DNA of 64,000 bases from Phallusia mammillata. Its lineage: Eukaryota. The position numbers and the translations under genes were made by a program. Below, one piece after another: positions 8,808-57,343 of this stretch (position 1 is the first letter of the stretch; every line of letters starts with the position of its first letter). A model generated the notes under the pieces. That model made no database searches and was not told the DNA's origin. It worked only from the letters and a program-made list of their open reading frames with translations. Location: NCBI GenBank assembly GCA_965637545.1, contig OZ281495.1, positions 5,642,001-5,706,000 on the forward strand, in the 5' to 3' direction.

Positions 8808-8823
8808 CTTATTCAAATAGAAT
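8808..8823 (-). other. Perfect copy of the ascidian (Ciona-type) 16-nt spliced leader ATTCTATTTGAATAAG at the LINE 5' terminus
   Basis: Plus strand CTTATTCAAATAGAAT; reverse complement is 16/16 identical to the known Ciona SL, 70 nt upstream of the ORF1 ATG and abutting the CAAG direct repeat. Confidence 0.85.
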
Positions 8824-9348: not shown

Positions 9349-10570
9349 ACAATCACAATGACTCCGTGCCGATTGGTTTATGGTTGGATACACAGTTACT
9401 ATGAATTCGAAGTTGCTTTGCATGTATATTTACGAAACGTTTGGAATTGACGTTATATATGTATGTGTTCAGTTTAAAACCTGAAAATAGAAAATGAAAA
9501 AAAATAATACAAAGGCAATATGTGTATCAAAAAAGATTTTTTTAAATCTTTGGTCAAGTTTTCTGTCCTATGATCTTCTGGTATAACTACGTGTTCTGAC
9601 CAAGGTTTTAAAGTTCTTTCCCATCTAAAAATACATGAATATTGTGATTGTGATGCACTCAAGAAGAGTGGAGTTTTACTTACAATTCTATCAGCACATG
9701 CAAAAAGAATCCAAGCACTTGCCAAATTTCGATAAACATTTCATTTAAAACGGAAGAGTACTACTAATAAATAAAACGCATGCATTTAAAAAGAACAATT
9801 GATTCTTTACTGTTTTATAAAAGGCAGTTCGCACGAACTTATAAGTGCTGCCAATGCGCTGCAGTTACACCGTTACTACAAGCGAGTTGTCACCAATAAA
9901 AATATTATGATTTCACTCATTAAAAGAACAAGCAGTTTTACTGCAACTTTTTCGAAAAATACCATAATACTACAAACAAATCTAGCAAGTTACTGTGCTA
10001 ATATTGCTATGGCTAACGTTTCTGGTGTTTTTTTTTATATCAAGTCGAAAATAGGTGGTACTAAATACCGCATGTTATTCCGCCTAAAATATTACATGGT
10101 ATGTAAGAATACAAGCCCCAACAAGGGTAAATTAGATCAGTATTTAGGGTCACATGAGGTATCATTAGGTATTTAGTACCACCGGTCGCAAATCATGATG
10201 GCGACATCCAGATGATGGCGATATAGTAAAATAGCGAACGTTTAAAGTTGGGCCCCAATCTAAACTGATAACATTTCTCAGAAATAAAGACCTTATATTT
10301 TTCACGTCGTTGATACAATTGAGGACGTATTTAGCAAATAATGATGTTTTGTCAACTCTGATCATAGGACTCTAAAGTCTGAATGTAGTTTTTAAAATAC
10401 AAGGTTCCACAGTATTGGGTTAGGAATAGAATTAGTTAAAATAATTATTCAATTAAAAACCTAATCTAACCTTCCATTGGAAAGAAAAGGGGCGATGTTT
10501 ACTAAATCCATGTTGTTTATCGATCTTACATAAATTGAATGCATTTCCACAAGTCGTTCAAAAACGAAGT

Positions 10571-10788
10571 TAGTCCCAACACACATCCAAAACCCCAAAC
10601 CCCAAACCCCAAACCCCAAACCCCAAACCCCAAACCCCAAACCCACACCCTAACCCTTGGGGTTTGGGGTTTGGGGTTTTGGATGTGTGTTGGGAGTTTG
10701 GGGTTTGGGGTTTGGGGTTTGGGGTTTGGGGTTTGGGGTTTGGGGTTTGGGGTTTGGGGTTTGGGGTTTTGGATGTGTGTTGGGACTA
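10571..10788. repeat. Fold-back element built of (CCCCAAA)n / (TTTGGGG)n telomere-like repeats
   Basis: TAGTCCCAACACACATCCAAAA-(CCCCAAA)n ... (TTTGGGG)n-TTTTGGATGTGTGTTGGGACTA; the right arm is internally duplicated; CCCTAACCCT lies at the centre. Confidence 0.85.
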
Positions 10789-13700
10789 CCGAAACACTTT
10801 TCCAGCATTATTTGCGTGTTTTAACGTTAACTGCGGTATTTACAGTTTGTCGCATAAAAACAGCACAGCTGCAGTATTTTCGAGTTACGTCGTACCTATT
10901 ATGAGTTTAATCGCCCTAAAGAGAGTTACCTGCACTATTTTTAAGTTGCGTTGCACGAAAAAAGGTTACCAAGCGAGGTACCAAGCGCACCTAGCGCACC
11001 TGTAGTATTCGAAGGCACCCGTTTTTTATTACTTTGCCAAGTAAAAAATAAAAATAAATCATAGATGGGAAATCCCCTTACTGTATCCGACGGTGATTTC
11101 CCGAAACAGAACTTTTTTATATGTATTTGATTGATGCATTTACCGCATTCAAACAAAAATTTAATGCAAAAATATTTTTACTAATAACCAGAAAATTGTA
11201 ATTGGCTTTTGACGATCTAAGTTTGTATTAAAAAGTTAAATTTTTTTTACATCGTTAAATTAATAATACGGTTGTGCGCATGCGCTACATTATAGCAGAA
11301 GGCATGAATAAAACTTAAAGGTAAGTGTGATTTTTAAGTTAAAATAAAGATCTAAAATTTAGTACTAATACCAATACTTTGATTTAGTTATTTTACCAAC
11401 ATTTTGCCTTAGTTAAGAAATATGTTTGGTAAAATAAACAGTTTACAATCTGAGCGAAACGAAATTTTGTTTCAATTTTGCGAACATTTTTTTAAAAATG
11501 TTTAATATCGATCGTTTGGAATTTGTAGCGCTGCATCTTTTTCACTGTGGGTGTATTAGGTTGTATTTGCCCTATTTCGCCTAAACAAGCTTATTTCTGT
11601 CTACAAGGTTGTTTGTCATCCAACCACGTTTATGTATAGTTCTCTGTATTTTGCGTGTTTTAATTGCTCTCTAGTTTTGTCTGAAATTTGTGTGATGCTT
11701 TGCTAGTATGAATAATGTAAATGTAAAGACAGACAGACAGAATTAAATTAATGAAGGCAAAACTTTGTGGTAATGAAGACAAAAAATGCTTTAGTTTTTT
11801 TTACATATTTATACATATAATAGAAAAATTATTTTTGTCATAGTGTGTGTTCACTACAGTCGGTTTAAATAATTTTTCTATCTCATTGAATTTGGGCTAA
11901 AAATATCGGTTTAACGATAATATATTTTGGGTATTGTACCTTGTTTAATGATTGACAACAAAAAAACGTAAGAGCTTCCATAAAGCCTTTTTCACTCACT
12001 AGAACTATAACAGTTTAAAAAGCAGTCCTTAAAATGACTAGCATTCTTACGAGAGTGCCATAGTGGCAGCGCGCGGGTTCTAGCTGTCGTTCAGGAAATG
12101 TCTACAGTTGAGCTAAAGGTTTTTTATCTAAAAAATATGACAATAAGTTTCATCATTTATAAACAGATAAAAATTTAGTTTAAAATTTTCGGGCTGTTTA
12201 GGACGAACTTGTGTCGACATTTTTGTTGAGACAGAATGCCTTGTTGCACAGAAATTAGCGTTCCGTTCATGTTAAAATAAAACTGCTTAAATCATTATAA
12301 GCTGTCGTATACATTGCAATATCATGTGGATTTTGGTGGTCATTAGATCATTATTAATAATAAAAAAAATTAGACATGTATACTTTGTCTAATTGCATTG
12401 ATTGACAAAATTCTTTTCATGACTGAAACTTGTATTTCTAACTAGCGAAAAACATAAAAAAGCAATAGATTAGATTTTTATTTGTTTAAAGATTCTGTTT
12501 TAATAGACATTTACTACCAAACTTAAAAATTCTCAAATGTGAGTTTTGCAAATTTCGTGTCAGAATGTTTTATTTTTAATATCGTGTTTGCTTTTCAAGG
12601 TCCTCTGGTAGAAACAACCACGGTTAAACTATTTTCCAAGCCCTTGTCTAATGTTCCTATATTTATTGTATCGGTCTATAGTGTTGGTACTATACCATAT
12701 TTTGCATTTTCAGGAAATCAAAAGAGAGCACCAGAAAACATGAAAAAAATATAGGTGCAAATTTTCTGGTGGTGATCACGGCAATTGTTATACATACTAC
12801 GAAACTTCATACATTTATTCGTCATATCTTGTAAAGTTGGAAAGAGTATTATCGATGTCAGTGACATTTCAGGTATAATTTGAATTGATATTAGTTATAA
12901 AAGCACTTGCTTTATTGTTTCTCTACGCCTTAGTGTTTTTAAGAAATGAATAATTAATTTTACCTATATTTTACTCCTTATGTTTTCTGTGACATTTTTA
13001 AGTCGAGGCAAAATATAACAAAATGTTATGCCTAAACGGTTTATAAAACTAAATCACATCGTTTTTAGTGCATTGTGGGTAACCTATTCGCCACATAGTT
13101 AATGTACATATCCGTATACATTGCTCCTAACGATGTTGGTCCGTGGTATTAGGAAAATAGTGTTTAAACTCTTCTTTATGATATATTGTGATCTTGTGTA
13201 GGAAAAAAAACGACCAAGAACCTTTATTGTTTAAAAAGATTATATTAGAAAGGGAGTACTTGATAAGAGATAAGAGCAGGTTATTTTTCTGACAAATTTA
13301 AAACGTTAAACCTAGCCAAGATATTGGAATAATGAACTATATAATTCTCCACATACCTTTTTTCGCACAAGTTTCAATTTACTTGTTGAGACTGCATTTT
13401 AAGTTTAGATAAAAATTATGTTTAGTTCTAAACAAATATTAAACAGTGAATTCATTTAAGGATAATATGAATATTCCTGGCTTTTATTTGTTTTAAACCA
13501 GATTGAGCAATCCGACAAATAACGACCAACAAATAGCGTTGTTTTTTATACGAGTTAAATTAACGTTAAAATGATTAAATTGATAAAGCATCTTTAAATA
13601 TTTCTTACAGCTGGAATAAAAGCATCAAAAAACACTTTGAAACTAAACTTTATTATTACAAAAATAAAACTACTGTAAAGTACATGGAAATAAATATCTC

Positions 13701-16479: not shown

Positions 16480-19400
16480 ATTGCTGGTCTTTCTGCTAAA
16501 AATGCAAGTTTTTTGTTACTATTTAGACAGTTGTGTCACAACGTTTTCAAGTGGACCTATACATACTTTTCCATGTAGGTCAACTTCAGCATAAGGATCA
16601 TCATCCGAGCCTGAAAAGATTTACATAATGAATACAAAACATAAATATTAATCATCCAGTTGAAACGATGTATATTGAACAGCAGCAAAGAAAACAACAT
16701 AATGGTTTCACACAATCTGTAGTAACTTCCCCAACAAATCTGTATTAAGACATCAGCTAAAAGGGTAAACACAAGGTCTCACCTGATTCTGAAGGGGGGT
16801 CAGTTGGTGGTTCTTTCTTTTTCTTTTTTGGTTTGTTGACAACTGTATAGGTTTCACCTTTGCTTGATTCGCCCAGATTGTTATCTAGCAACAACATTTT
16901 AACAGTTATTTTTGAGTCTTTGATATGTATTAAGTCATAAAAACCATTGTTAATCAATAGTTACAATCCATTTTAATATTTTTATTGCCCCTTTTCCAAG
17001 TAAAGCTATCAACCAATTATATTGTGCTCACCATTTTTTTTCTTTTTTTTAATAACCTGTGCATAAGCATCATCCACACTCCCACCAGCTTGAGAAGTAG
17101 CATACAGAATATTGTCCTTCATTTCCTTTTCGCCACGATCTATGGATGTTTGCAAGTTTAGCACACAAAAACATTCAACAAACCCAGGTGCCCTACTTGG
17201 CTTTTGTTTCTTTCCCTTGGTTTTCTTTGTCTTATCAACTGCAGCATATGCTTCCTCTGGGGCATCAGGGTTTTCTGGGGTTGGTACATATGCCACATTC
17301 ACTTTTGTTAGTTTTTCTATCAAAATAACATTGAGATTATTTTGAATTACTCTTTCAATTTAATTAGCAAAACCTTTTTTGGGTTTCTTATTTTTATCCA
17401 CTGCAGCATATGCCTCTTCAACTGGTTGAGATGATGGTCCAGCAGGTTCATAAAGTATATTTTTTTTTGTAATTTTTTCACCTTTTACAAAAACGAAATT
17501 AAAATTTTTGACAAAAATTCATGTTCGTCAACCAGCACAACAAATAACAGTACTTTAAGGTTGGAACATGTTAAAAGTTGTTCAAACCTTTGGCAACTGT
17601 AGCATAGGAATCTTCTATTGTGCCTGCTGTTGAGGGAGACACAGTTTCTAGTTTTGATCCTGCTTTCTTAAATTTTTTAGTTTTTTTGTTGACTTTAGCA
17701 TAGGTTTCCTCTTGGTTACCATCATGGACTATACCATACAATGGGTTTTCTCTGTCTTCTTTCACACCTGATATAAACACATTTTTATTTGACTTTGTTT
17801 GTTAGTCTTGTTTGTATTGTAAGGTTTTGTTTTTGGCACTTAGTCTGGCCAGGATAAATGGTAAAAACTTAACTATTACACTTGAAATGAAATAATATTT
17901 TCAGATCAAAAGCACAAAAACTTATTATAAAATTGTTTTTTAAGACATTGCTATTTGAGTATTAGTGTATCATTTATTATTTTTATATTGTACTGATTAT
18001 CAAACAATGTCAGCACAACAAAATAACTAAAACTGTAAAAAAAAAAACATGAACATGAGTTCACTTACACTTATTACTTTTTCTTTTTCGTTGAACAAGA
18101 ACTATTTTAATGCTGCTTGATATGATAACAATACTTCCAGCAATACTCAAGCTGATGTACAATACAACGCTTTGACTTTCCTCAACAAAAATATTGATTG
18201 TCAGGTTCAAGGTACCATTTACTGTTGCAATGTATTTACCCATGTCTTGCATTTCAACCTTGACATAAATTTTATATAGTAATTGCATACAATGTTTCTA
18301 CACATATACTGTTAGAACAACTGTATCTCAAGTTGTAATTCGCTAATAGTTATTTTAATGCTAGAATACCACTTTGTTTGTATAGTTCAAAGAATGTTTT
18401 GTAAGCTTAATTCATGAAAGAGTTTTGCAAGTGTTTTGAAACTAGAAGGGTGGCTTAGCACAATTTGTCGTTGCACATACACTATAACCTATTTTAAAAC
18501 ATTAGTATACTTCCTCTCCTAATTTTATATTAGGTCCCATATTAGCCACCGTCTATTATAACCTTAGTTGTTTCTGCACGCAGAAACTCATGGGTCCCCA
18601 AACAGAAAGTCGGGTGTGGTAAGGTAAAACACAGTGATGGGCACTGGGCTTAAATAATAACACTATGTAGAGGACAAACTGTACAAATCAGATTCACCCC
18701 AGAAATTTTAATTCTAATTCTAAGCTGTCAAATATTTATTCAATTTGAACATTGGTAAAAGAGCCCATTTTAGAGGCCAGTTAGATAAATTATGGGGCTA
18801 CAGGGCGAAACACAACAATTGAGGACCTAAAATAGTATGTTCAATAAACTTTGCAAGTTTATTTAATTCCGCCTTTTCTAAAAAATTCACTTATATTAGG
18901 GGGCTGGTGGGGTAAATGTTTTGAGCTATAGGGTAAAGCACAACAATCAACAGTTATAACTGGCAAATCCTACAAGATATACAGATTTCCTCTATGTTAA
19001 AAGTTGTTTGGAAAATTAACCAATTTTAAGGGGCAAGTGGGGTAAATGTTGGAGCTACAAGGTAAAACATGTCAATCGAAACCTACAATAAGAAAATTCT
19101 ACATGCTTTCCAAATTTTAGTCAATTCCAACACTGTTTATTAAACTCACTCATTTTAGGGTGCCTACTAGTGTAACTTAAGAGGTTTGACACACAAAGTA
19201 AAACATTATAAACCGCAATGACTCAATCAATATTATTGCAAAATTGGAGCTCAATCCGCCAATGTTTAAAATTCCAACCACTAGAGGTGTTTGAGCAACA
19301 AACATTCATGCTTCGGACGTCATAGGGCTGTTAACACCCCTCTAACTACCATGGCATAAAAACATGCACCAAGCAACCCACAAACACGAGAAACACAGGA

Positions 19401-22400
19401 CTGGTTGCCCTTGTAACACTATTGCGCCACAGAATTGTTTCGTTTGTAATGCCTAGTAACAAACAAATACATTTTACACTTTGGGGGCTAGTGGGTGGAT
19501 CCATATTGATTTTCATAAAATTTCTTTTAAAACCTTGGTCCTTTCAAACAAAACAAAAAAATGATTGAATAACTAAAAAAATATTGTAGGCAATGTCCTC
19601 AAAGCACATGTGATTAATAAAGACAATATTCTTACTCACAATGTTTTTTTGAATTTTGAACATCTGTACATCTGATGAAATGGTCATACAACTCATACTG
19701 CTTAAGAAGGAGTTTGAAAAACTGCATTTAGTGGGTGGATTTGATCGATACAGAATGGAGCAATCACCACTCTGACCCACATACCATGTGCAATTTCTTT
19801 CTACACCTTCCACACTTTCTGGTGGGTCTGGAAAACATTTAATAAGTCAAGCACATTAAAAACATCCTTAATCAATTATCACAGGAGGGAGCATATGAAT
19901 GCTGAGTATAAACCTTCCGGTGTTTTTTGCTTGTGGTAATATGTGAAATAAATTAAACATAATCTTAATGGTTCAATTATATTATGTTTTTCACTGTTCT
20001 TTGCAAAACCTCAAACACTGCAATAAAGAGTTACACTGGATTTAGGGTTTAATGGTCATTTAGGTATAACCTGATGGAAACTTATAACTTATTTTAAGCA
20101 ACTGCAAAGAAAGTAACCAGTGTAGTGTAAAAAATGCCCTGAACATATTTGTAGTGTTAAGGTAAAAATCGAACCATCCAAGGCCCTAAAAATTACACCA
20201 GAAAACTGACTTTTGCATCATCTTATAAGGACAGTTTTCAGATCAGTGGTGAAATTTCTCCCCAAAATAATAAATGGTAATCATTAAACCACTAAAAGCG
20301 GCAACGAAACACAGAACATCTTACACAGAACATCCAAGTAAAATAACCTTTGAACATTTCCAAACTTATCAGTTGCATTGCATGTGTAAAAACCAATGTC
20401 CAAACTGGTCACATTAAAAACATTTAGGGTTTGATTATTAAACTTGTATCTTCTACTGCTGCTATTTGTTCTCCAGGAATAACTTGGGATCAAAAGAGAA
20501 TGTGTAGGAAAAGAGCAGTTGACAAACAAACTTTCGCCTTTCTCTTTGATAATGTTTTCATATATCTTGGTATTTCCTATAAGCAATGATTAAGTCATGT
20601 ATATTAGATTCAAAATTGGGTTTTATATCACTTACTATTTTTTGGAATAATAATTAGACTGTATACTGTGCTATTTACTGATCCTTCTCTGTTCCTCGAA
20701 ACACAGTAAAAAGATCCAGTTGAAAGGTTGCTAAATTTTCCCAAACATGTGTTACCATGATTTAGGTTTTGGTTGCTGACATTGTCATAGTTGTTAAACC
20801 AATGACATGTTGGGACTGGATTTCCCTGACTTGAACAGTTAAGATTGAGAATCATATCTGATCTAACTAAACCCCTTTTTTCACTTAAATTGATGAGTCT
20901 TGATGCAACATTTGTTAGATCCAAACTAACATTCTGAGGAGAAACTAACAAAAAACAAATATAATATATACTACAACCTGTGAAAACTTTAAAATACAGC
21001 CTAGGCACTTACACAGCACAGTCAACAATTGAATTTGGGATACTTCTGTACTTGGAAATTTGTTGGTGTATTTGGATATTGGTTGACAGTTTACTGTTGC
21101 GTTGTTAAGATCAGGTTTAAGTGTAATATTAAATTCACTAGTCTGCAATACAAAAAAATGAATACAACATTGTGGAGCAATAATAATTTTTTTCAAGCAA
21201 ATTGGTATACACTTTTGCAGCTTAACCCAAAAGAAATGAAATCCAGTTTTGGAAACTTACTTGATTTTTGTTTATTGTTTCTCCAACTGTAAATGTGTAG
21301 TTAATGACAGGTGGATGCACAAGCATGTCAGCATTGCAACAAATTGTTATTCTATCTCCAGATTTCCCTTCAAATGTTCCAGTAAGATTGAAAACAGGTG
21401 CTACCGATAAAATAGAAGGCATTGTTTAAATCTGTATCAATACTTTGCATTACAAGCACTTAAATGTTAAATGCAAAACTACTGGTTGCTCTATAAAAGT
21501 GTCTTATATATTTCCATTTTTAATGTCTTACATATTTCCATTAAAAGATTGCTTGTGTTATGTTTGTATTGGAACGTACATTTTTCTTTGCTTTTCCTAT
21601 ATAATACAAAATAAAACTAAACGCACCTGACCAACATTCCAAGTTTTGTATTCCTTTCCATTCAGCATTTTGAAGACATCGTGTTTGAAGCTCAACTGGA
21701 CGAGTTGAATTTTTAAAAAATATTTTTTTTCCTGACTCACACTCAAATTTGCCTTGTGCATCATAATCAAATGCCCCATTTACAAAACTATCATCTGAAT
21801 TCACATGTGGTTGGTGTTTACTAACATCAGATTGGCAACCTTTCCAAAAAACAAGTGTTTTCTATTTTCCTTTTTTATTCGTGTTTTATACTTTTTGTAT
21901 AAGGTTTCAACATCACTCAGCTCAGTGATTTTTAGAGTGTGATAGTAACACTATTACCTGTGTGCTAAAGTGGATAGATTTTGTTTCAATTGCAAGTTGC
22001 AATCTTCACAAATAACTTATACATAAGAATATGAATACCTCTGTCCTAACAATGCTTTAACAATGCTTTTATTTCAAGTTTCACAAAGGAGGGTCATTGG
22101 CAGTCTCAGTATGTTTGGTTTTGACATTAGATTAAAAAAAGTTTTGCAGTGTTTGGCAAAATGCAGCTAAACTATGGTAAATTTTTGAATGTTGGAAACA
22201 GTAAATGGAAATGAATTCAAATTGAGTATTAATATGCCTCACAGCAACATGACTGATCTTGGTCCTGACACACTGCATGCGAAAGGTTGCTGACCTGCTT
22301 TTTAATGATATCCAAATGATTTACAAACAACGAAATTAGGCATGACACTTTAAGCAAAATGCACAAGTTTTGAAGTTTTAATCAATATGGCCAGTTCAGA

Positions 22401-24559: not shown

Positions 24560-26007
24560 CTTAAAACAGGGATGAAACAAACAGTATGTTTGCATTACAA
24601 GAAAAAATCCAGCATTGGTTGTTTCATGTTACAACTCCTAGGTTTGTTAGTAGTGACTGAAAAAACAGTTTGTTCTACATATCTTTAATGCAGAGGATCT
24701 GTGGCATCTTTATTCACTGTAGAACCAATTAATAGCATATCTGATGCGATATTAAATTCAAGGTTATTACAGTCATCGTTCCAGTGTGTTGCATGCTGTT
24801 GTCACATGTTGTGGATTAAAGTGTAACTTGCTGTGTACAACAATGTTCCGTGCATGTTAAAGTTTTGTTAAAAATGTTCAAACTTTTGAAATTTGTTACT
24901 GTGCATGTCAAAGTTTATTTCTTGTAAAAAAGATGGCAAAATATGCATATACCTAGAAAACTTTTAAAGATTGTTTTTGGTAGGATTGTTGTGAATAAGA
25001 AAGTTAACATACGGAAAGAAATAACTGATAAGAATGTGATAAAGCAGCTACGTTACTGTGTTTTTGATATTTTCTTCTAATACATTAGCAACAAATTATC
25101 ACAGAGGTGAATGAATACAATATTATTTGACACATACTTTTACTTTGGGATATGCAAATCAATGTGATAAAGAAACAAAATATTCTACAAAAACAACATC
25201 TCAACTTTTGGTCAAATCCTACAAAAGTCTTACGGCAGTACTCAATACTCTCAGAAAGAAGAATCTGACATTGACCAAAATGAGTTTAACAATTTTAAAC
25301 TTGAATTTTTTGGATTTGTTGTAAGCAAATAAGGAGTCTATGCCCAAAAAAGAAAATTGAAGCAATCAAAGATGCTGAAATTCCTAAAACAAACAAAGAA
25401 GTGAGATTCTTACTTGAATTAGCAAAATGCTGTTCAAAGTTGGATAAGGATTATGCTACAATTACTTCAACGTTAAGAGAACTTACTCACAAGAATTCTA
25501 CCTGGGAGTTGAATGCAAAACATGAACATGATCATTCATTACAACAACTAAAAGACATTTTAACCTACACAGCTGTCATACACCATTTCGATTGACAAAA
25601 AGGCACCAAGCTGATTTTTGATGCAAGTATAATTTGATTAGGCCTTACCTAACAAGATGAAAACAATAACTTCCACATTATTGCCAGAAAGGTGCCAACA
25701 TCAGTTGAACAAAGATAATCACAAACATAATGTGAAGCACTAGAAATCGTTTGGGGATGTAAAAACTTCGCCTTTAGTTGTGTGGAATGGAAAAAAAAAC
25801 ATTTACACTTGTAACAGATCAAGTCTTTAGAATTGATATTCAAAACTCGTCAACAAAACCTCCACAAAATTTGATAGATGGCACTTGAGATTGCAAGCAT
25901 ACAATTTCAAAATTGTATACCGACCAGGCAAAGACAGCCCAGCAGATTACATGTCAAAACATTCTATTACACGTCATTCAGTTCCAGAAATAAATAATAC
26001 TAAAAAA

Positions 26008-27380
26008 ACTAGAAAGGTGGCTCAGCACATATTGCCGTTGCACATACACTATAACCTATTTTGAAACGTTGATATATTCCCTACACATATTTTATATTGG
26101 GTCCCATATCACCCACTGTCTTTTATAACCTTAGTTGTTTCTGCAGGCAGAAACTCATGGGTCCCCCACAAATGCAACAATGCATTTCAAGAGATAATTG
26201 TCAGTCGGGAGTTTTAAAAAAACACTGTGGTCACTTCTTGTCCTAAATAATCATGCTACTATCTGTTTAAATTATGCAAATCTGATTCAATTTACACATT
26301 GTCCTATTTATTGTTCTATTTATAAGAAAGAATGGGGTAAATAGGGGCAAAATAAAGCTAAACACAACAATCGACACCTATAATAACAAATTCTGCAAAC
26401 TGTCCAAACTTGATTCAATTCCGACACTGTTTAAAAAGATTACTCATTTTGGGGGTTAATGAGGTGTATGGTGGGGCTACAGGGTAAAACACAACAACTG
26501 ACATCTACAAAATGACCATTCTACAAGCGTTTACAAAATTCAGCCAATTCCGACATCCTTTAAACAAGTCACCCATTTTAGGGGGGTAGAGGGTGAATAT
26601 TGGGTCTACAGCAGTGGTTCTCAACCGGGGGTCCGCGGGCCCCCAGGAGTTTGCAAAGCGTTTTCAGGGGGTCCGCCACAACTTCCTAATTTAGCAGACA
26701 ACGATATTGATAAAGCGCTAATTAAAAACTGTGTTACAGCGTTTTAAAATAGCATGAAACTTGTTTAAAATCATTTTTCATAGGCAACGATTAAACCAAA
26801 ATGCATTGTGACATTTTAACCCCATTGTGATGCAACAGAGGTTAATTTTGAGTGGCAAACAACGTCACATTACAATGTAGTGGCTCTTTATTATTGAGTT
26901 CCGATGTCGCAGTCCAGTCAAAGTGATTGAAATTTTGGTCCTGGACCAAACATGGTTGGTATATTCTGCACCTTTTTTGGGTTGCTTGTTATTAAACAAG
27001 GACAAAAAATAGCAAAACTATCAAAGGGGTCCGCGATTAGCTTGACAGTACCAAAAGGAGTCCGCAAAGGCAAAAAGTTTGAGAACCACTGGTTTACAGG
27101 GTTAAACACAACAATTGCCACCTAAAAATGACAAATTCTATAAGCTGTCCAAATTTCAGTTAATTCTGTGCTTGTTTTAAAAATAAATCACTTATTTTAG
27201 GGGGTTAGTTGGGCAATTGATGGGGTTTCACACCCCATAAGTAAAACATATGAAACCAGAATGACCCAATCATTATTAATGTAAAATTTTGTCCAAATAT
27301 GCCGATGTTTAAAATTCGGACCACTAGAGGTGTTATTAGCAACATTCGTTAACGCTTCTGACGTCACAAGGCTGTTAACA
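26008..27380. mobile_element. Helitron-like repeat family copy 4, inserted in the Gypsy remnant
   Basis: ACTAGAAAGGTGGCTCAGCAC start, ~120-bp subrepeats, and a CCACTAGAGG..GCTGTTAACACC end as in copy 2. Confidence 0.6.
26612..27091. mobile_element. hAT MITE nested in the Helitron-like copy
   Basis: TIR CAGTGGTTCTCAA; TSD GTCTACAG/GTTTACAG. Confidence 0.85.
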
Positions 27381-29152
27381 CCATAAAACTTTTTTATTGT
27401 TATTTATTTTTTCTATTTTACGAATCCCGATCAAGGTTTTTTATGTGTGTATATGGGTCAGGCGCTCCAGACCATTCGGCCAAGTTTCTGTTAACACTTT
27501 ATCATTCGGCCAAGCTCCTGTTAACACTTTATATTTATTATACCATTACACCACAGAAATATTTCGTTTGTGGTGCGCAGTATCAAGTCAAACGAAGCAG
27601 ATGGCACATCTGCATAACTATATCTAACATCTGTGAAAGTTTTATCCAAATCCACCAAATTTCAAGCCAAAAGTGCATGGATAATTTTTACCGGTGAAAA
27701 AAAAAGAAAAAAAAAACTGAGTGAAATCAAGATGCGGGGACCCATAAAAACTCAATTTCTTTGCCACAGCAGTTATACCTACGGCATTAACAATAGATGA
27801 TATGCAATATGCCTTTCAAAACCATGAAAAACTTCAAAAAGTGATTGAAATGTCAAGAAGCAACTAATCCAAAAATTATCAACCACTGCAAATGTCTGTG
27901 GAAAGAACTTCGAAAGGAAAGAATCCAATTGTCAAAGTTATCAGGTCCACTAATGAAACATGGTTTGGGATATCAAATATCCACTGTTTAACTGAATTCA
28001 AGAAATTTGCAAAACAACTTCGATTTACTCATCGAATGATTACTCCACCTTGGCCAAAAAGGAATGCTGAAGCAGAAAGATGCATAAAAACCTTAAAGAA
28101 AGCTGTGAAAATCATGAATGCTGTAAGTAACTCGTGGTAAGGTAATCTACAACAATTTCTTTAAAAGTACAGAGCAACCCATCATTCTGCAACACAAGTG
28201 AGTCCTGCTGAACTACTATTTGGCAGAAACATCAAAATAACTATTCCTTGCATTGATGAGATAACAAAAGACACAGACCTTTGTATCACAGATGAGCATG
28301 CTAAAAAGAAGATGAAAAGGCATGCCGACACCCGAGTGAAAAAGCACCACATGTCCAAATTGGCAATCAAGTTCTTTTGAAAGAAAGAAAAAAAAATGCT
28401 TTCATATAATCCAAATGCACTCACAGTTACATACACCAAAGAAACAAACGATCGCCACAAAACAAAACAAAACAGTAACCAAAAATTCATCATTCATGAC
28501 CAGGATAACACAACACCTTGTAAAGAATATAATGCAAACGTTATTGTAGAAAAATGACCCTGTTCGTCTTTACCCTACTAGAAATCGTTCACACCACGTT
28601 GTTTCATTCTATGAGCGCAAGCAACAGCGAAAGTCACTAAACAAACGCTTTGCGTTATGTCTTGTCTCTAACATAACACTGGTTAGCGAAACACTATAGC
28701 ATTTTTATGTGCAAACACCTTTGGCGGGTTGTGGGTCAAATCCTAGTTCGCCAGGCCTAATGACGGCGTCTTACAAATCAGCCCGTCACCAAGCATTATA
28801 CCAGTAGTTCTCAACGGGGGCGCCAGCGCCCCCCTGGGGGCGTTTTCTATCACAAAGGGGGCGCTGGAGAATAATTGGGCGATTGGGGGGCGCTGAGAGA
28901 AAATAGAGCAGTTAAAACTAAACAAAAGTCAAAGTTATATTTTTCATATCTCTTCCAGTGACCAGTATAAGTAAATTTATTTTTCACTAAATTATATTTT
29001 CAAGTATTTACTGTATTGGGTGCTTTGTTTTGCTATGTGTTTTTGATTATGATGTCACAATGAATTTTGTGCAAATCACAATGCGCCATTTGTCGGGGCT
29101 TGTCTGCGCTTTATTAGCAACATTTGCAGGTAGTGATTGAGTTGTGCCAGGC

Positions 29153-31400: not shown

Positions 31401-31999
31401 GTGAAACGAAAAAGAACAAGACGCGTTTGATTATGATACACAAGACATAATGCTAAGACATTCAAAACAAATGCAATCTGGCATTCAGCTCTAAAGCAAC
31501 TGCATTCAACAAGCGTACAACTGCACGGGCAACAACACTGGGCAATCAGTCCAGCATATACCCTGGACGACTGTCCCGAGGATAACACTCTCCCTTTCGT
31601 AACGAAAGGGACCGTATAAAATACTGTGTCGTAGGTATGTGAACGCAAGAAAGGGCGATTACATGAAAAGCGCCAATACAACAGAATAATTAATGCCATC
31701 GTTTATTTGAAATACGACAATTTATAGTTTAATTTGGTAATGTTTACGTTACAGAGATTTCTTCCGAGTATACTGCGTTGGTCAGTGAATTGACCTGTCC
31801 TGAGGGCAAATATGTGACGTCTTGTTTCAGATTGTTAGGAAACCGATTGTGGTTTGTTGTAAGCAAACATGTTGTTTTAAACGCAACAGTGCTGTAAAAG
31901 CTTTTAAAGCTAAAATATATTTCTTTCTTGACAGTTAAAAGAAATAATGCCTCGCACTTGTGGAGATGCGGCCTTTGATAGGTCGATAAATACCGCCAA

Positions 32000-32360
32000 G
32001 TGATTTACAGACTAATAGAAGAGACTTATGACTTTGATCAACTTGAGCCATGGGTTGCATTCACCTCAAATCCCTTCAGGCCGGTGGACATTACATCCAC
32101 AGCTGAGAACCTAAGTACAACCTTTACATTGGATGCGGCGCAGGTGTCAGTGGATACAATAACATTGCAAAATGATCTGCACCTGAAAGCAAACCTGATT
32201 AACCCAAACGTTTGGAACTTAGTGGACAAAGAAAAGTTTAAAGCTAACTCTACAGAAGCTATGAAGATTGCTGGTCTCTTCGGGTTCACATATCTTTGTG
32301 AATCAACATATTCAGACATGAACTTTATAGAACATAAACACCGTGTAAGATTTCTTGCCT
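32000..32360 (+). pseudogene. hAT (Buster/Charlie) transposase C-terminal remnant
   Basis: FGFTYLCESTYSDMNFIEHKHRVRF resembles the hAT dimerisation motif F.STYLCE..FS.M..IK.K.R.RL. Confidence 0.7.
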
Positions 32361-35300
32361 CTAGCGGCGCAAACTGTTATGTACGGTTGCCAGGAAGATC
32401 GTCCTGGCATTGCTATTGTCGCAACAATGACTTTGTGACGTAAAATCCATTGTGGTGCAATTACCTTGTGCGAGACCGCATGGTTATTAGTTATTAGTGT
32501 CTGTGATGTGCTGAACGCATGAAAGTGAATTGTGATAGCTAAGTAACGACATTCTGATTCTATTTGAAACAGAAATTTTACTGCAAATGTGCAAAAGTTG
32601 TACCTAAGTAAATTGGACCTGTGAACTTTGCGCTGAGCATTGGAATATTGTGACCCGACTAATTTACTGTGGGCAAGATTCGGCGTACATCGATCTGTGC
32701 GAGGAAGTGACTTGGTTGCATTGCTGTACGCCGGTATGTTTTAATGTAATGGCCTGTATCTTGGTGTGTTTTTACATGTTTTACTCATTACGCCTTACGA
32801 TATTTACAGTGTGAAAACCGTAATCTGTGATTTCCAACTGGGAAGTCTAATGCCTGGACCGATCAAAGTTCGGTACGTTATTTGTTTCTCTCCTGTAAAT
32901 GCGTTTGTCGTTGTTCCTCGTTCTGACTTTTACTAGTGTTGTTATGTTTGCAGAAAACCGCGTTTATTGCGCGCGTCATTCATCTTGGTCGAAATAAAAA
33001 TTCTGTTGCTCGCACTGGTAGCTTGTCCAGGCGCTGCACTGAAGGTGCGACGCTACACACCGAACACGCCTAACAGATGCACATCTGCTAGAGTCATTGA
33101 GAGTGTGTCAAAACTATACACCGGACTACAGTTTTAAACTAAACACTCCAAGAGACAAGTGAACGAAATGGAATGCCAGGGTTCTCAATAACGGGCTGAC
33201 CTAGCAGAACAGTGTTGTCTTGACAATCGATTATTGTTTAAGCTCGCTTCAAATTTCTTTACAAAACCTCATGCATTAAAAAATTTAACGCCACTGTTAC
33301 TTGTGTTTTAACTTATTAGCCATTTGATGGCCATAGCGTAGCGCGTGGCCTTAATAAACTTGGTGACCCCTGAGATAGACTGTTGTCGCCGGCCGCGCAA
33401 AATCAGCGCGCACAGCCCGGATGTGGCTCGATTTTAAATATTATCTTAGGAATCTAAGACGTTTTACAAGAATACGTCAACCCAGACAATTATTGTGTTA
33501 GTAATTGCCTTTTTCATACTTGTTGAAGATGTGTTATGGATTTTTATTGTTATGTGTTATGGATTTTTATTGATATACAACAATTACAACTGCATTTAAA
33601 TTCTTTACAATATATTCTTTAGGATTAAGGCATTTTTTATTTTACCACATACTAAATCTGCATACGTACTTTTGATGCTATGGCCTCATTCAAATAGACA
33701 TTAGCAACAGTTGTCATTGATAGATCCATTGAATAGATTGCTTTGGAGGTAGCGTTTGCCCCCCTTGCTTGTTTATCACTTGGTGATAATGTAAAGTTGC
33801 TTTCATTATCTGTAGAACACAACAAAGAAAAGGTAGACTTGACTGGATGAAGACAAAAAGCACTGAGCTAAATTCAATTAGATTTCATTACAACAGTGCG
33901 GTAATATAAATTAGCATTTGCTATCACATTTTTGCAACCTAAAATTCCAACATTTTCAAGTGAAAAAAAAAATAGTTCTGAACTAGTGCAAGAACCAGAA
34001 AGACTGCCACACTGATTTAAAATGTGGTACTATTAAAAATTAAAAAAATACTTTGCAAAGTCACCCATATACACGATACTATCCAGAAATTTTTGAAATA
34101 TATTTTGCTTTAGGACGTTGCAAGCTACAAGGCATCGCTTTAAAATTTACTCAAGAAAACTAGTTGCTTATACATTGCACAGCAAGTGGCGAAGTGTGGT
34201 GCCAATCAGGTGGCCGCATTTTTACCTCACGGGCAAAATGCATCTTTTTTTTCGCCGACCAGTCTTCTCGAGTTTTAAAAATAGGCAGAATTAAAAATAA
34301 CAAAGCATTTTCAAAACAAGCGTGTCTGTCGGGTTAAACCAAATTTAGATTGTTGCCTAAATAGCATAGATCGGTACTACCACACCTTAACGCATTTCCA
34401 AAGCGTTTTGCACCTATTTTCCTAAGTTTGTGAGGCTTAACAATTACGTGTTTCAAACAACACATCTGATCGCTCAGGAATGAAATATATGGTACTTGTC
34501 AATTTAGACCCAAACTTTTAACGTTAATTGTAACAAAAACACAAAAAATATAAACAACAATGGAAGTATGCGTCACAAAATACATCACTTAGGCGTAATG
34601 AGATAATTATTTGAATACGAAGAGATTATAGAAAGAATATGAAAATTAATTACAAAATTTGATGATAGATTTATGATCGTGCTGATACTTGTGACAGCTT
34701 GAGTTAAGACTTTAGCGGAATGCCGCTCCGGTACTGATTTTTTTACCCCCAACGGCTACTAATCCTGCTTACCCTACTGGTCTGGTAATGAGATAACAAT
34801 AGTTGAAAAATTTCTCGTTTACTACAGTCATTATAGTATAGTGCAAGGGTGGGCAACCTACCACCTGCGACCACATTAAAAATACGTATTTTTTTATCGG
34901 CCGGATGCGATTGATGCGTTACATACCTTACACAAAAGAGTTTTTATATTAAACGCCGATAGTAAATTGTTTATCATCACAAATAAGCATTGTTACGTAC
35001 AAAAGAATATTGTGCGTTTGTAAGTACTGTATAGTTTACTTGAAATTGCAACCACCCCCGAGCCTTGAATACGATTCACCGTAAACAAACAAAAAGAGAT
35101 GTCATTTTTGAACACCCTGTTCACTCGGCTATCCATTTGAACTGTTTGATTTTAACTCACTATGCTTGTTACAAGTTTGTTGCTGTGTGTTTCACTGCTC
35201 GCCACACTCACTTTCTTGTAACCTCTAAACACCTTATTATACGATATGCATTGCATTTACCCATCATCACCCAATTACCCAGACTCTTTTGGCGCCTCTT

Positions 35301-57143: not shown

Positions 57144-57343
57144 NNNNNNNNNNNNNNNNNNNNNNNNNNNNNNNNNNNNNNNNNNNNNNNNNNNNNNNNN
57201 NNNNNNNNNNNNNNNNNNNNNNNNNNNNNNNNNNNNNNNNNNNNNNNNNNNNNNNNNNNNNNNNNNNNNNNNNNNNNNNNNNNNNNNNNNNNNNNNNNNN
57301 NNNNNNNNNNNNNNNNNNNNNNNNNNNNNNNNNNNNNNNNNNN
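57144..57343. other. Assembly gap (200 N)
   Basis: Run of Ns. Confidence 1.

Follow-up and report, generated by a model that had tools for sequence, protein, structure and literature searches.

An exon-repeated array of NxxY and YAxV tyrosine modules in the tail of an expressed immunoglobulin-superfamily receptor of Phallusia mammillata

Among living animals, tunicates are those most closely related to vertebrates, and their immune-type receptors are poorly mapped. In Botryllus schlosseri, a recent description (PMC12582321, PNAS 2025) presents FcoR as a receptor with a signal peptide, an immunoglobulin (Ig) domain, a Sushi domain, two further Ig domains, a transmembrane (TM) segment and a tail with a tyrosine-based inhibitory motif of immunoreceptors (ITIM), a hemi-activation motif (hemITAM), core-1 (YxxI/L/V) or core-2 ([A/D]VYxxV) sites. 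According to the same text, FcoR1 with a dual core-2 pairs with the activating receptor uncle fester, ascidians express homologs of Src, Syk, SHP-1 and SHIP and, as stated in its introduction, genes proposed to act in invertebrate allorecognition lack obvious homologs beyond familial clades. Here we describe a gene of the ascidian Phallusia mammillata, located in a stretch of 64 kb (hereafter the window, in which all coordinates are given), which encodes a type-I receptor of the Ig superfamily with a tail made of repeated tyrosine modules.

Other described systems share parts of this tail. The EPIYA-A/B segments of CagA, as well as Pragmin and p140Cap, bind the Src homology 2 (SH2) domain of Csk when phosphorylated (PMC3593179; PMC3561454). 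CD200R signals through a K/RxNxxY site to Dok2 and RasGAP, the proline being dispensable (PMC8007030), and in PECAM-1 the skipping of exon 14 removes SHP-2 binding (PMC5664058). An earlier note on the window, made from its letters, had compared the tail with CagA and proposed an inhibitory or tuning receptor. The gene is expressed, carries one module per phase-1 exon, as does its Ciona relative, keeps the context of its tyrosines across relatives and differs from them in the number of its modules. We propose, with a probability of about 0.5, that this tail is a multi-site phosphotyrosine scaffold damping or tuning Src-family signalling.

Tail exons and their transcripts

Six short minus-strand exons between 16567 and 17767, which are exactly the donor of the sixth (T6) and the acceptor of the first (T1), encode on translation seven motifs of the form (E/D)xY(A/T)xV-basic and four of the form [K/R]xNxxY. 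Every string reported in the earlier note, including NPLY, NILY, NVAY and a second NILY, was found in these exons:

17767-17588, minus strand: T1, 180 nucleotides (nt), phase 1-1; NPLY (RENPLY), ETYAKVNKK and DSYATVAK; translation, AG/GT borders and RNA contigs
17481-17374, minus strand: T2, 108 nt, phase 1-1; KKNILY and EAYAAVDKNKK; an X5 contig joins 17586 to 17479 and the X1 depth arithmetic fits
17316-17197, minus strand: T3, 120 nt, phase 1-1; KVNVAY and EAYAAVDKTKK; first 41 nt inferred in X1 contig 2
17139-17032, minus strand: T4, 108 nt, phase 1-1; KDNILY and DAYAQVIKKKKK; a contig of depth 12.1 with the reference letters at 17093/17096, also covering T5-T7
16884-16783, minus strand: T5, 102 nt, phase 1-1; ETYTVVNK within ETYTVVNKPKKKKK, then a Pro-rich end; X5 contig running 16782-16885, 43 nt, 16495
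16610-16567, minus strand: T6 mini-exon, 44 nt; DPYAEV within DDDPYAEVDLHGK; the 43 unplaced letters of X5 record 11 fit this exon
16495-16478, minus strand: start of the last exon (T7); QKDQQ, stop TGA at 16480-16478, 3' untranslated region to at least 16000; X5 records 10 and 11, X2 record 6

All exons have canonical AG/GT borders and the lengths of T1-T5 are multiples of three. A full module is composed of an acidic/basic lead-in, [K/R]xNx(L/I)Y, a spacer of 13-14 residues, E-x-x-Y-A-x-V-(D/N) and a lysine run. The pattern [ED].Y[AST].[VIL], scanned in six frames over the whole window, matched 20 times, with seven matches in the same orientation within 16582-17708 and 13 elsewhere; at the background rate 0.022 motifs are expected in the 215-residue tail (P for at least seven, ~6e-16). 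The cores of the modules (41 nt) are 63-83% identical within the window and the introns between them are unrelated, the duplications being therefore ancient and the cores maintained by selection. The exon-repeated architecture claimed earlier is borne out, each module occupying a symmetric exon. The window was also searched for another gene of the family and for tail exons of paralogs, without success, and a word search with the 116-residue open frame running from T3 through the intron to T4 gave no match, the length of the query limiting this search.

In the seven motifs, the residue two positions before the tyrosine (Y-2) reads E, D, E, E, D, E and D, in agreement with the earlier statement that they are not canonical ITIMs. 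All four NxxY sites have K/R at -5; a true NPxY, the motif bound by phosphotyrosine-binding (PTB) domains, is found in only one of the four.

In runs X1 and X2, which belong to one study, and in X5, from a second, the assembled contigs behave as spliced RNA, and run X8 covers introns like DNA; splice joints were judged from the contig records listed, and exons were searched individually and not as a joined protein. Contigs of X1 and X2 join 18067-18250, in the TM exon, to 17586-17765 with 0 mismatches. The modules do form a receptor tail, as previously supposed, the receptor being of type I and of the Ig superfamily. The T1-T2 joint and the chain from T5 through T6 to the last exon are displayed in X5, and upstream of the TM exon the RNA runs from a Sushi-like exon through two Ig halves to a proximal exon. 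Examined bin by bin, the X1 depth table fits a contig of 511 nt (TM exon, T1, T2 and 41 nt of T3) and a contig of exactly T4, T5, T6 and T7, with the introns uncovered, and so places the exon borders to within a few bases. Skipping of tail exons in this gene was not seen in the RNA contigs listed, and the sole tail isoform found anywhere is that of Clavelina gene models (isoform X3), which lack the last tyrosine mini-exon; the proposal of a tail scaled by alternative splicing was accordingly not upheld.

T3 and T4 (17032-17316) are almost identical to residues about 528-598 of a Phallusia paralog, P0003, for which the figure is 58% over the whole tail and whose ectodomain is weakly alike. RNA contigs of this paralog lie on T3/T4 at higher depth, mismatching there at about 4 positions in every 100 nt, and the P0003 junction KQKP/EKEM is the junction of the mismatched X5 contig. 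The near-identity of T3/T4 in an otherwise much more divergent paralog suggests that these tail exons may have been exchanged between paralogs, for example by gene conversion.

Tunicate relatives and the ectodomain

A search of 1.84 billion proteins with a profile built from the six modules gave 45 matches, of which 28 were examined individually, the remaining 17 being all of at most 246 residues. The best matches are uncharacterised proteins, with E values down to 5e-48 and up to nine matched stretches. Bacterial matches P0015, P0041 and P0044, with IEDAYATG / ETYAVT repeats, were rejected as chance. No paper was found in a literature search by gene symbols of the family. The relatives are:

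Clavelina lepadiformis: LOC143446606 and CAK8677370
Ciona intestinalis: LOC104265904
Phallusia mammillata: CAB3262620 and CAB3262621
Styela clava: LOC120326230
Ciona savignyi: H2Y3Z3

Comparison of P0001-P0005, P0008, P0012 and P0018 with the window by tblastn gave E values of 2e-8 for the complement control protein (CCP, or Sushi) exon, about 1e-9 to 1e-11 for Ig exons, 2e-5 for the proximal exon and 4e-32 for the tail. As relatives align to its Sushi-like, Ig, proximal and tail exons, the gene is a member of a tunicate-wide receptor family present in Ciona, Phallusia, Clavelina and Styela and spanning four ascidian orders. The Ciona locus has the same exon plan, with a signal exon, an Ig, a Sushi-like, a split Ig, two Ig, a split proximal domain with the TM segment and one tail module per exon; its resolved tail exons measure 69, 42, 114, 114, 135 and 114 nt, and its last mini-exon (47 nt) changes phase as T6 does. 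In Phallusia, Clavelina, Ciona and Styela alike, a separate mini-exon carries the conserved end motif (Y-x-x-V)-D/V-L-H-G (T6 and the C-termini of P0001-P0004, P0008 and P0018). Head-to-head with LOC104265904 in Ciona intestinalis (L004, 4182-9574) lies a neighbouring gene that encodes a TM segment and has three or more Sushi-like exons; its product of 420 residues gives a faint Pfam Sushi match.

The tyrosines, whose loss in relatives had been named beforehand as fatal to the claim, are retained in context: across eight family tails, 80 of 87 are in NxxY or YxxV. The YxxV consensus is V-E-(A/D/E)-A-Y-A-E-V-(D/N)-K-K-K-K-K, with valine at +3 in 47/47 sites, alanine at +1 in 38/47, D/N at +4 in 41/47 and lysine at +5 in 37/47. 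The acidic Y-2 of all seven window motifs is a feature of the window more than of the family, in which this position is Ala, Asp or Glu in 42/47 sites, Ala being as frequent as Asp/Glu, I/V/L never found and S hardly ever. The NxxY consensus is E-K-E-E-(K/R)-(V/I)-N-P-L-Y (K/R at -5 in 36/44, E at -7 in 39/44), and the two tyrosines are 13-14 residues apart in 25/30. In line with the earlier interpretation, motif number differs across paralogs and species, from two YxxV-type tyrosines per protein in P0005 through four to five in Styela to nine in Clavelina, the P0005 record ending early at its C-terminus; the fragment P0012 holds one YxxV-type tyrosine.

Upstream of the tail, the exons of the ectodomain and of the membrane span are as follows:

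21627..21839, minus strand: Sushi/CCP-like exon, phase 1-1, four Cys and one Trp; RNA contigs X1 and X2, tblastn to the family E=2e-8
21261..21400, minus strand: Ig-like domain, first half; X2 record 8 joins it to 21627-21844 and 21013-21142, and the same split pair is found in the Ciona relative
21013..21142, minus strand: Ig-like domain, second half; RNA contigs X1 and X2, tblastn match to P0004
20636..20944, minus strand: cassette Ig exon, 309 nt, phase 1-1, intact; Pfam Ig_3 E=1e-4, homologous to included Ciona/Clavelina exons
20325..20576, minus strand: second cassette Ig exon, 252 nt, phase 1-1, intact; Pfam Ig_2 E=1.4e-6, 28.9 bits, above cut-off
19640..19827, minus strand: membrane-proximal Ig-like exon with the family 'C..SNP' signature; RNA contigs X1 and X2, 39.5% identity over 86 residues to Clavelina P0002
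18069..18258, minus strand: last Ig strand, TM helix and basic stop-transfer QRKRKSNK; translation, RNA contigs X1 and X2

Both cassette Ig exons are skipped in the RNA contigs seen, X2 record 8 joining 21013 directly to 19827; RNA depth is nil on 20636..20944 and a trace in X2 on 20325..20576. The splice sites and frame of both exons (20944-20636 and 20576-20325) are intact and their skipping preserves the frame. They are also the only two exons that Pfam recognised when single exons were searched, the Sushi-like exon not reaching significance. The residues C, C, W and C are invariant in the family alignment of the Sushi-like exon, and a profile search of the Protein Data Bank with this alignment returned nothing significant, CCP modules of factor B and C1s appearing at E ~0.8.

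The intron that separates the proximal Ig exon from the TM exon holds, at 18400-19500, a very high-copy, transcribed repeat element with many irregular joints; summed contig depth there is 100,000-320,000 in the DNA-like run and, in the RNA-like runs, from hundreds up to 1,600. Mobile-element-type open frames, integrase-like and reverse-transcriptase-like, occupy 25300-28400 and 31980-32440 on the plus strand, upstream, where the first exons of the receptor are expected. Elsewhere in the window, a tandem repeat open in several frames on both strands (10464-11002; GLGFGVW and PNPKPQT peptides) is probably a non-coding minisatellite, a 16-base ascidian spliced-leader sequence is found at 8808 (minus strand), and a run of N extends over 57144-57343.

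Proposed function and competing explanations

According to the proposed mechanism, engagement of the receptor would lead Src-family kinases to phosphorylate both tyrosines of a module. By analogy with CD200R, the NxxY site would then dock a PTB adaptor of the Dok or Shc type, and by analogy with CagA EPIYA-A/B, Pragmin and p140Cap, the phosphorylated YAxV (pYAxV) would dock an SH2 protein, most likely Csk. The lysine runs may hold the unphosphorylated tail to the inner leaflet of the membrane. The net effect would be a damping or tuning of Src-family signalling, the number of modules setting the gain.

Several points weigh against this reading. Docking of Csk and Dok, phosphorylation and the inhibitory sign are predictions drawn from sequence. 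Short SH2 and PTB motifs are degenerate, and pYAxV fits SHP-2, SHIP and AP-2 too. The word inhibitory in the earlier note was a guess. In Botryllus a similar dual [A/D]VYxxV is carried by a receptor that partners an activating one (PMC12582321). The T3-T4 joint of this locus is not among the contig records listed; contigs break there because the more highly expressed paralog has almost identical T3/T4 exons. For the ectodomain, it is solely by its Cys/Trp pattern that 21627..21839 may be called Sushi-like, and AlphaFold models were poor, with a predicted local distance difference test (pLDDT) of 34 for the paralog ectodomain and 48 for the Sushi-like exon of the window, so that no fold search was made. 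Signal-peptide and N-terminal Ig exons were sought upstream of 21850 in the window and not found. The layout appears to match the one published for FcoR, and any kinship with FcoR is conjectural.

Among the other explanations, an endocytic or engulfment tail is possible although unlikely. As in LRP1, megalin and CED-1/Draper, NPxY/NxxY and YxxV would be sorting signals, to be read by the PTB domains of Dab2, ARH, Numb or GULP and by AP-2 mu2, and repeats would raise uptake rather than signal strength. NPxY and Yxx(hydrophobic) are indeed the two classical tyrosine sorting signals, both are present in every full module, and NPxY motifs are described as mostly mediating trafficking in PMC8007030. 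Sorting, however, does not need the conserved alanine at +1, the invariant valine at +3, the D/N at +4 or the lysine run; kinase substrates typically show such upstream acidic residues and an E at -3, and the ectodomain has an immune-type Ig-superfamily/FcoR layout, not that of LDLR or EGF proteins. We find it improbable that the gene is a classical ITIM-type receptor recruiting SHP-1/SHP-2 or SHIP like PECAM-1, CEACAM1 and the Siglecs. The distal motifs of these three read xxYSEV followed by basic residues, and the core Y-A/S/T-x-V of the window fits them. The exon-modular tail recalls PECAM-1 (PMC5664058) and homologs of SHP-1 and SHIP are reported in ascidians (PMC12582321), but in the ITIM pattern (I/V/L/S)xYxx(I/V/L) the defining position, Y-2, is Asp/Glu in 7/7 window motifs and Ala/Asp/Glu in 42/47 family sites.

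An activating tail, in which acidic-x-Y-x-x-V sites would act as hemITAM-like sites or like immunoreceptor tyrosine-based activation motifs (ITAMs) and recruit Syk upon clustering, is a shade less credible still. Its nearest candidates in the window are YGIV-x8-YAKV in T1 and DDDPYAEV in T6, the latter to be compared with the hemITAM defined as [E/D]3xYxxL and exemplified by EDDVYAIL of FcoR in PMC12582321, where the dual core-2 FcoR1 partners the activating uncle fester and ascidians express Syk. Neither an ITAM of the form YxxL/I-x6-8-YxxL/I nor a hemITAM was recognised, as +3 is Val in 47/47 sites and never Leu/Ile; the triple-acidic run of the last motif is not conserved in Clavelina or Ciona, and the 13-14-residue spacing pairs NxxY with YAxV and not two YxxL. 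Chance translation of low-complexity sequence, or a dead gene, could be evoked from the Lys/Glu-rich tail, its A/T-rich DNA and the first exons not found in the window; this explanation is effectively refuted by the motif density (P ~6e-16), the zero-mismatch spliced RNA contigs, the intact frames and splice sites and the relatives in five species.

Comparison with described receptors and effectors

FcoR and the window gene are both ascidian type-I Ig-superfamily receptors with an apparently similar layout and a tyrosine-motif tail, the FcoR and Fester features that follow being those given in PMC12582321. For the FcoR layout Ig, Sushi, Ig, Ig, TM, the window has Sushi-like, split Ig, proximal Ig-like and TM exons, present and expressed. 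The seven YxxV sites of the window fit the core-1 motif and none fits core-2, which is fitted by the AVYAAV...AVYSEV pair at the end of Styela family members. In Fester genes, two extracellular exons lying between Sushi and TM are removed by splicing, and the window gene skips two Ig exons in a like position. In contrast to FcoR, the window gene has no canonical ITIM or hemITAM; its family also has NxxY sites, runs of lysine and a 3-9-fold array of exon modules, of which no mention was found for FcoR in the parts of PMC12582321 consulted. A Fester-like partner, or a second Sushi/Ig gene of the family, was not found adjoining in the 64-kb window, where a miss is possible as Fester genes are very divergent. 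The present family spans four ascidian orders, as opposed to the limit of familial clades stated for allorecognition candidates, and its common layout in Ciona, Phallusia, Clavelina and Styela offers a tractable route to the question of where Botryllus-type receptors originated.

Among vertebrate receptors, CD200R1 is an Ig-superfamily receptor without ITIM in which acidic residues precede a [K/R]xNx(L/I)Y site docking the PTB domain of Dok2, and the NxxY of the window fits that site. CD200R1 differs by having one such site with a PYxxY, two Ig domains, no Sushi and no YAxV-lysine partner, and the window tail is without PYxxY; homology is not implied. PECAM-1 (CD31) resembles the window tail by its many short exons with tyrosine motifs on separate exons, and differs from it by true ITIM and immunoreceptor tyrosine-based switch motif (ITSM) sites, by exons that are not repeats of one module and by skipping that changes SH2 recruitment. 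Being countable, the exon-module array of the ascidian family is a natural series for asking whether module number sets signal gain. In feature space, the closest neighbour of the P0003 tail is SCIMP, a membrane adaptor that interacts with Csk (score 0.78), a weak lead.

The likeness to CagA proposed in the earlier note holds in a restricted form. EPIYA-type sites and the YAxV of the window have in common E at -3, Y, A at +1, V at +3, N/D at +4 and then lysines (+5..+7), and both lie in repeated disordered segments, so that the resemblance extends past the tyrosine (E-x-x-Y-A-x-V-[DN]-K-K-K). The modules do not contain a literal E-P-I/L-Y-A, the motif that Src/Abl phosphorylate and that SH2 domains of Csk/SHP2 then bind, positions -2/-1 being different. 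As none of the 28 profile matches examined is CagA, the other 17 of the 45 being the short ones, the likeness to EPIYA-A/B is on sequence grounds one of short motif, not homology. The contexts also differ, the window gene encoding a host membrane receptor, CagA being an injected effector and Pragmin and p140Cap cytoplasmic scaffolds.

A second, large family of proteins with YAQVDKKKK tails was observed (P0006, P0007, P0009-P0011, P0016, P0020 and P0051-P0168; loci L002 and L003), encoded by single uninterrupted open reading frames in eukaryote-like ENA/NCBI contigs, including those of samples ERZ25072152 and GCA_022076465.1, often several per contig. These proteins have a TM segment, possibly a discoidin-like ectodomain (a feature-space lead only) and, in 117 of the 125 counted, a tail with up to eight repeats of P-V-D-Q-L-Y-A-Q-V-D-K-K-K-K. 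The tail ends with G-A-V-Y-S-V-V-N-K-P and prolines, and T5 of the window is very similar (E-T-Y-T-V-V-N-K-P); the shared ending Y-(S/T)-V-V-N-K-P with prolines may point to a tail cassette common to both families and to a single conserved partner that binds it, Csk being the candidate. That the Y-A-x-V-(D/N)-K-lysine unit is an old, widely used docking module of animals, the host template imitated by bacterial EPIYA-A/B, is a speculative and rather unlikely extension. The likeness of the tail both to the bacterial EPIYA segments that bind Csk and to the Dok2 site of CD200R bears on whether such docking codes predate vertebrates.

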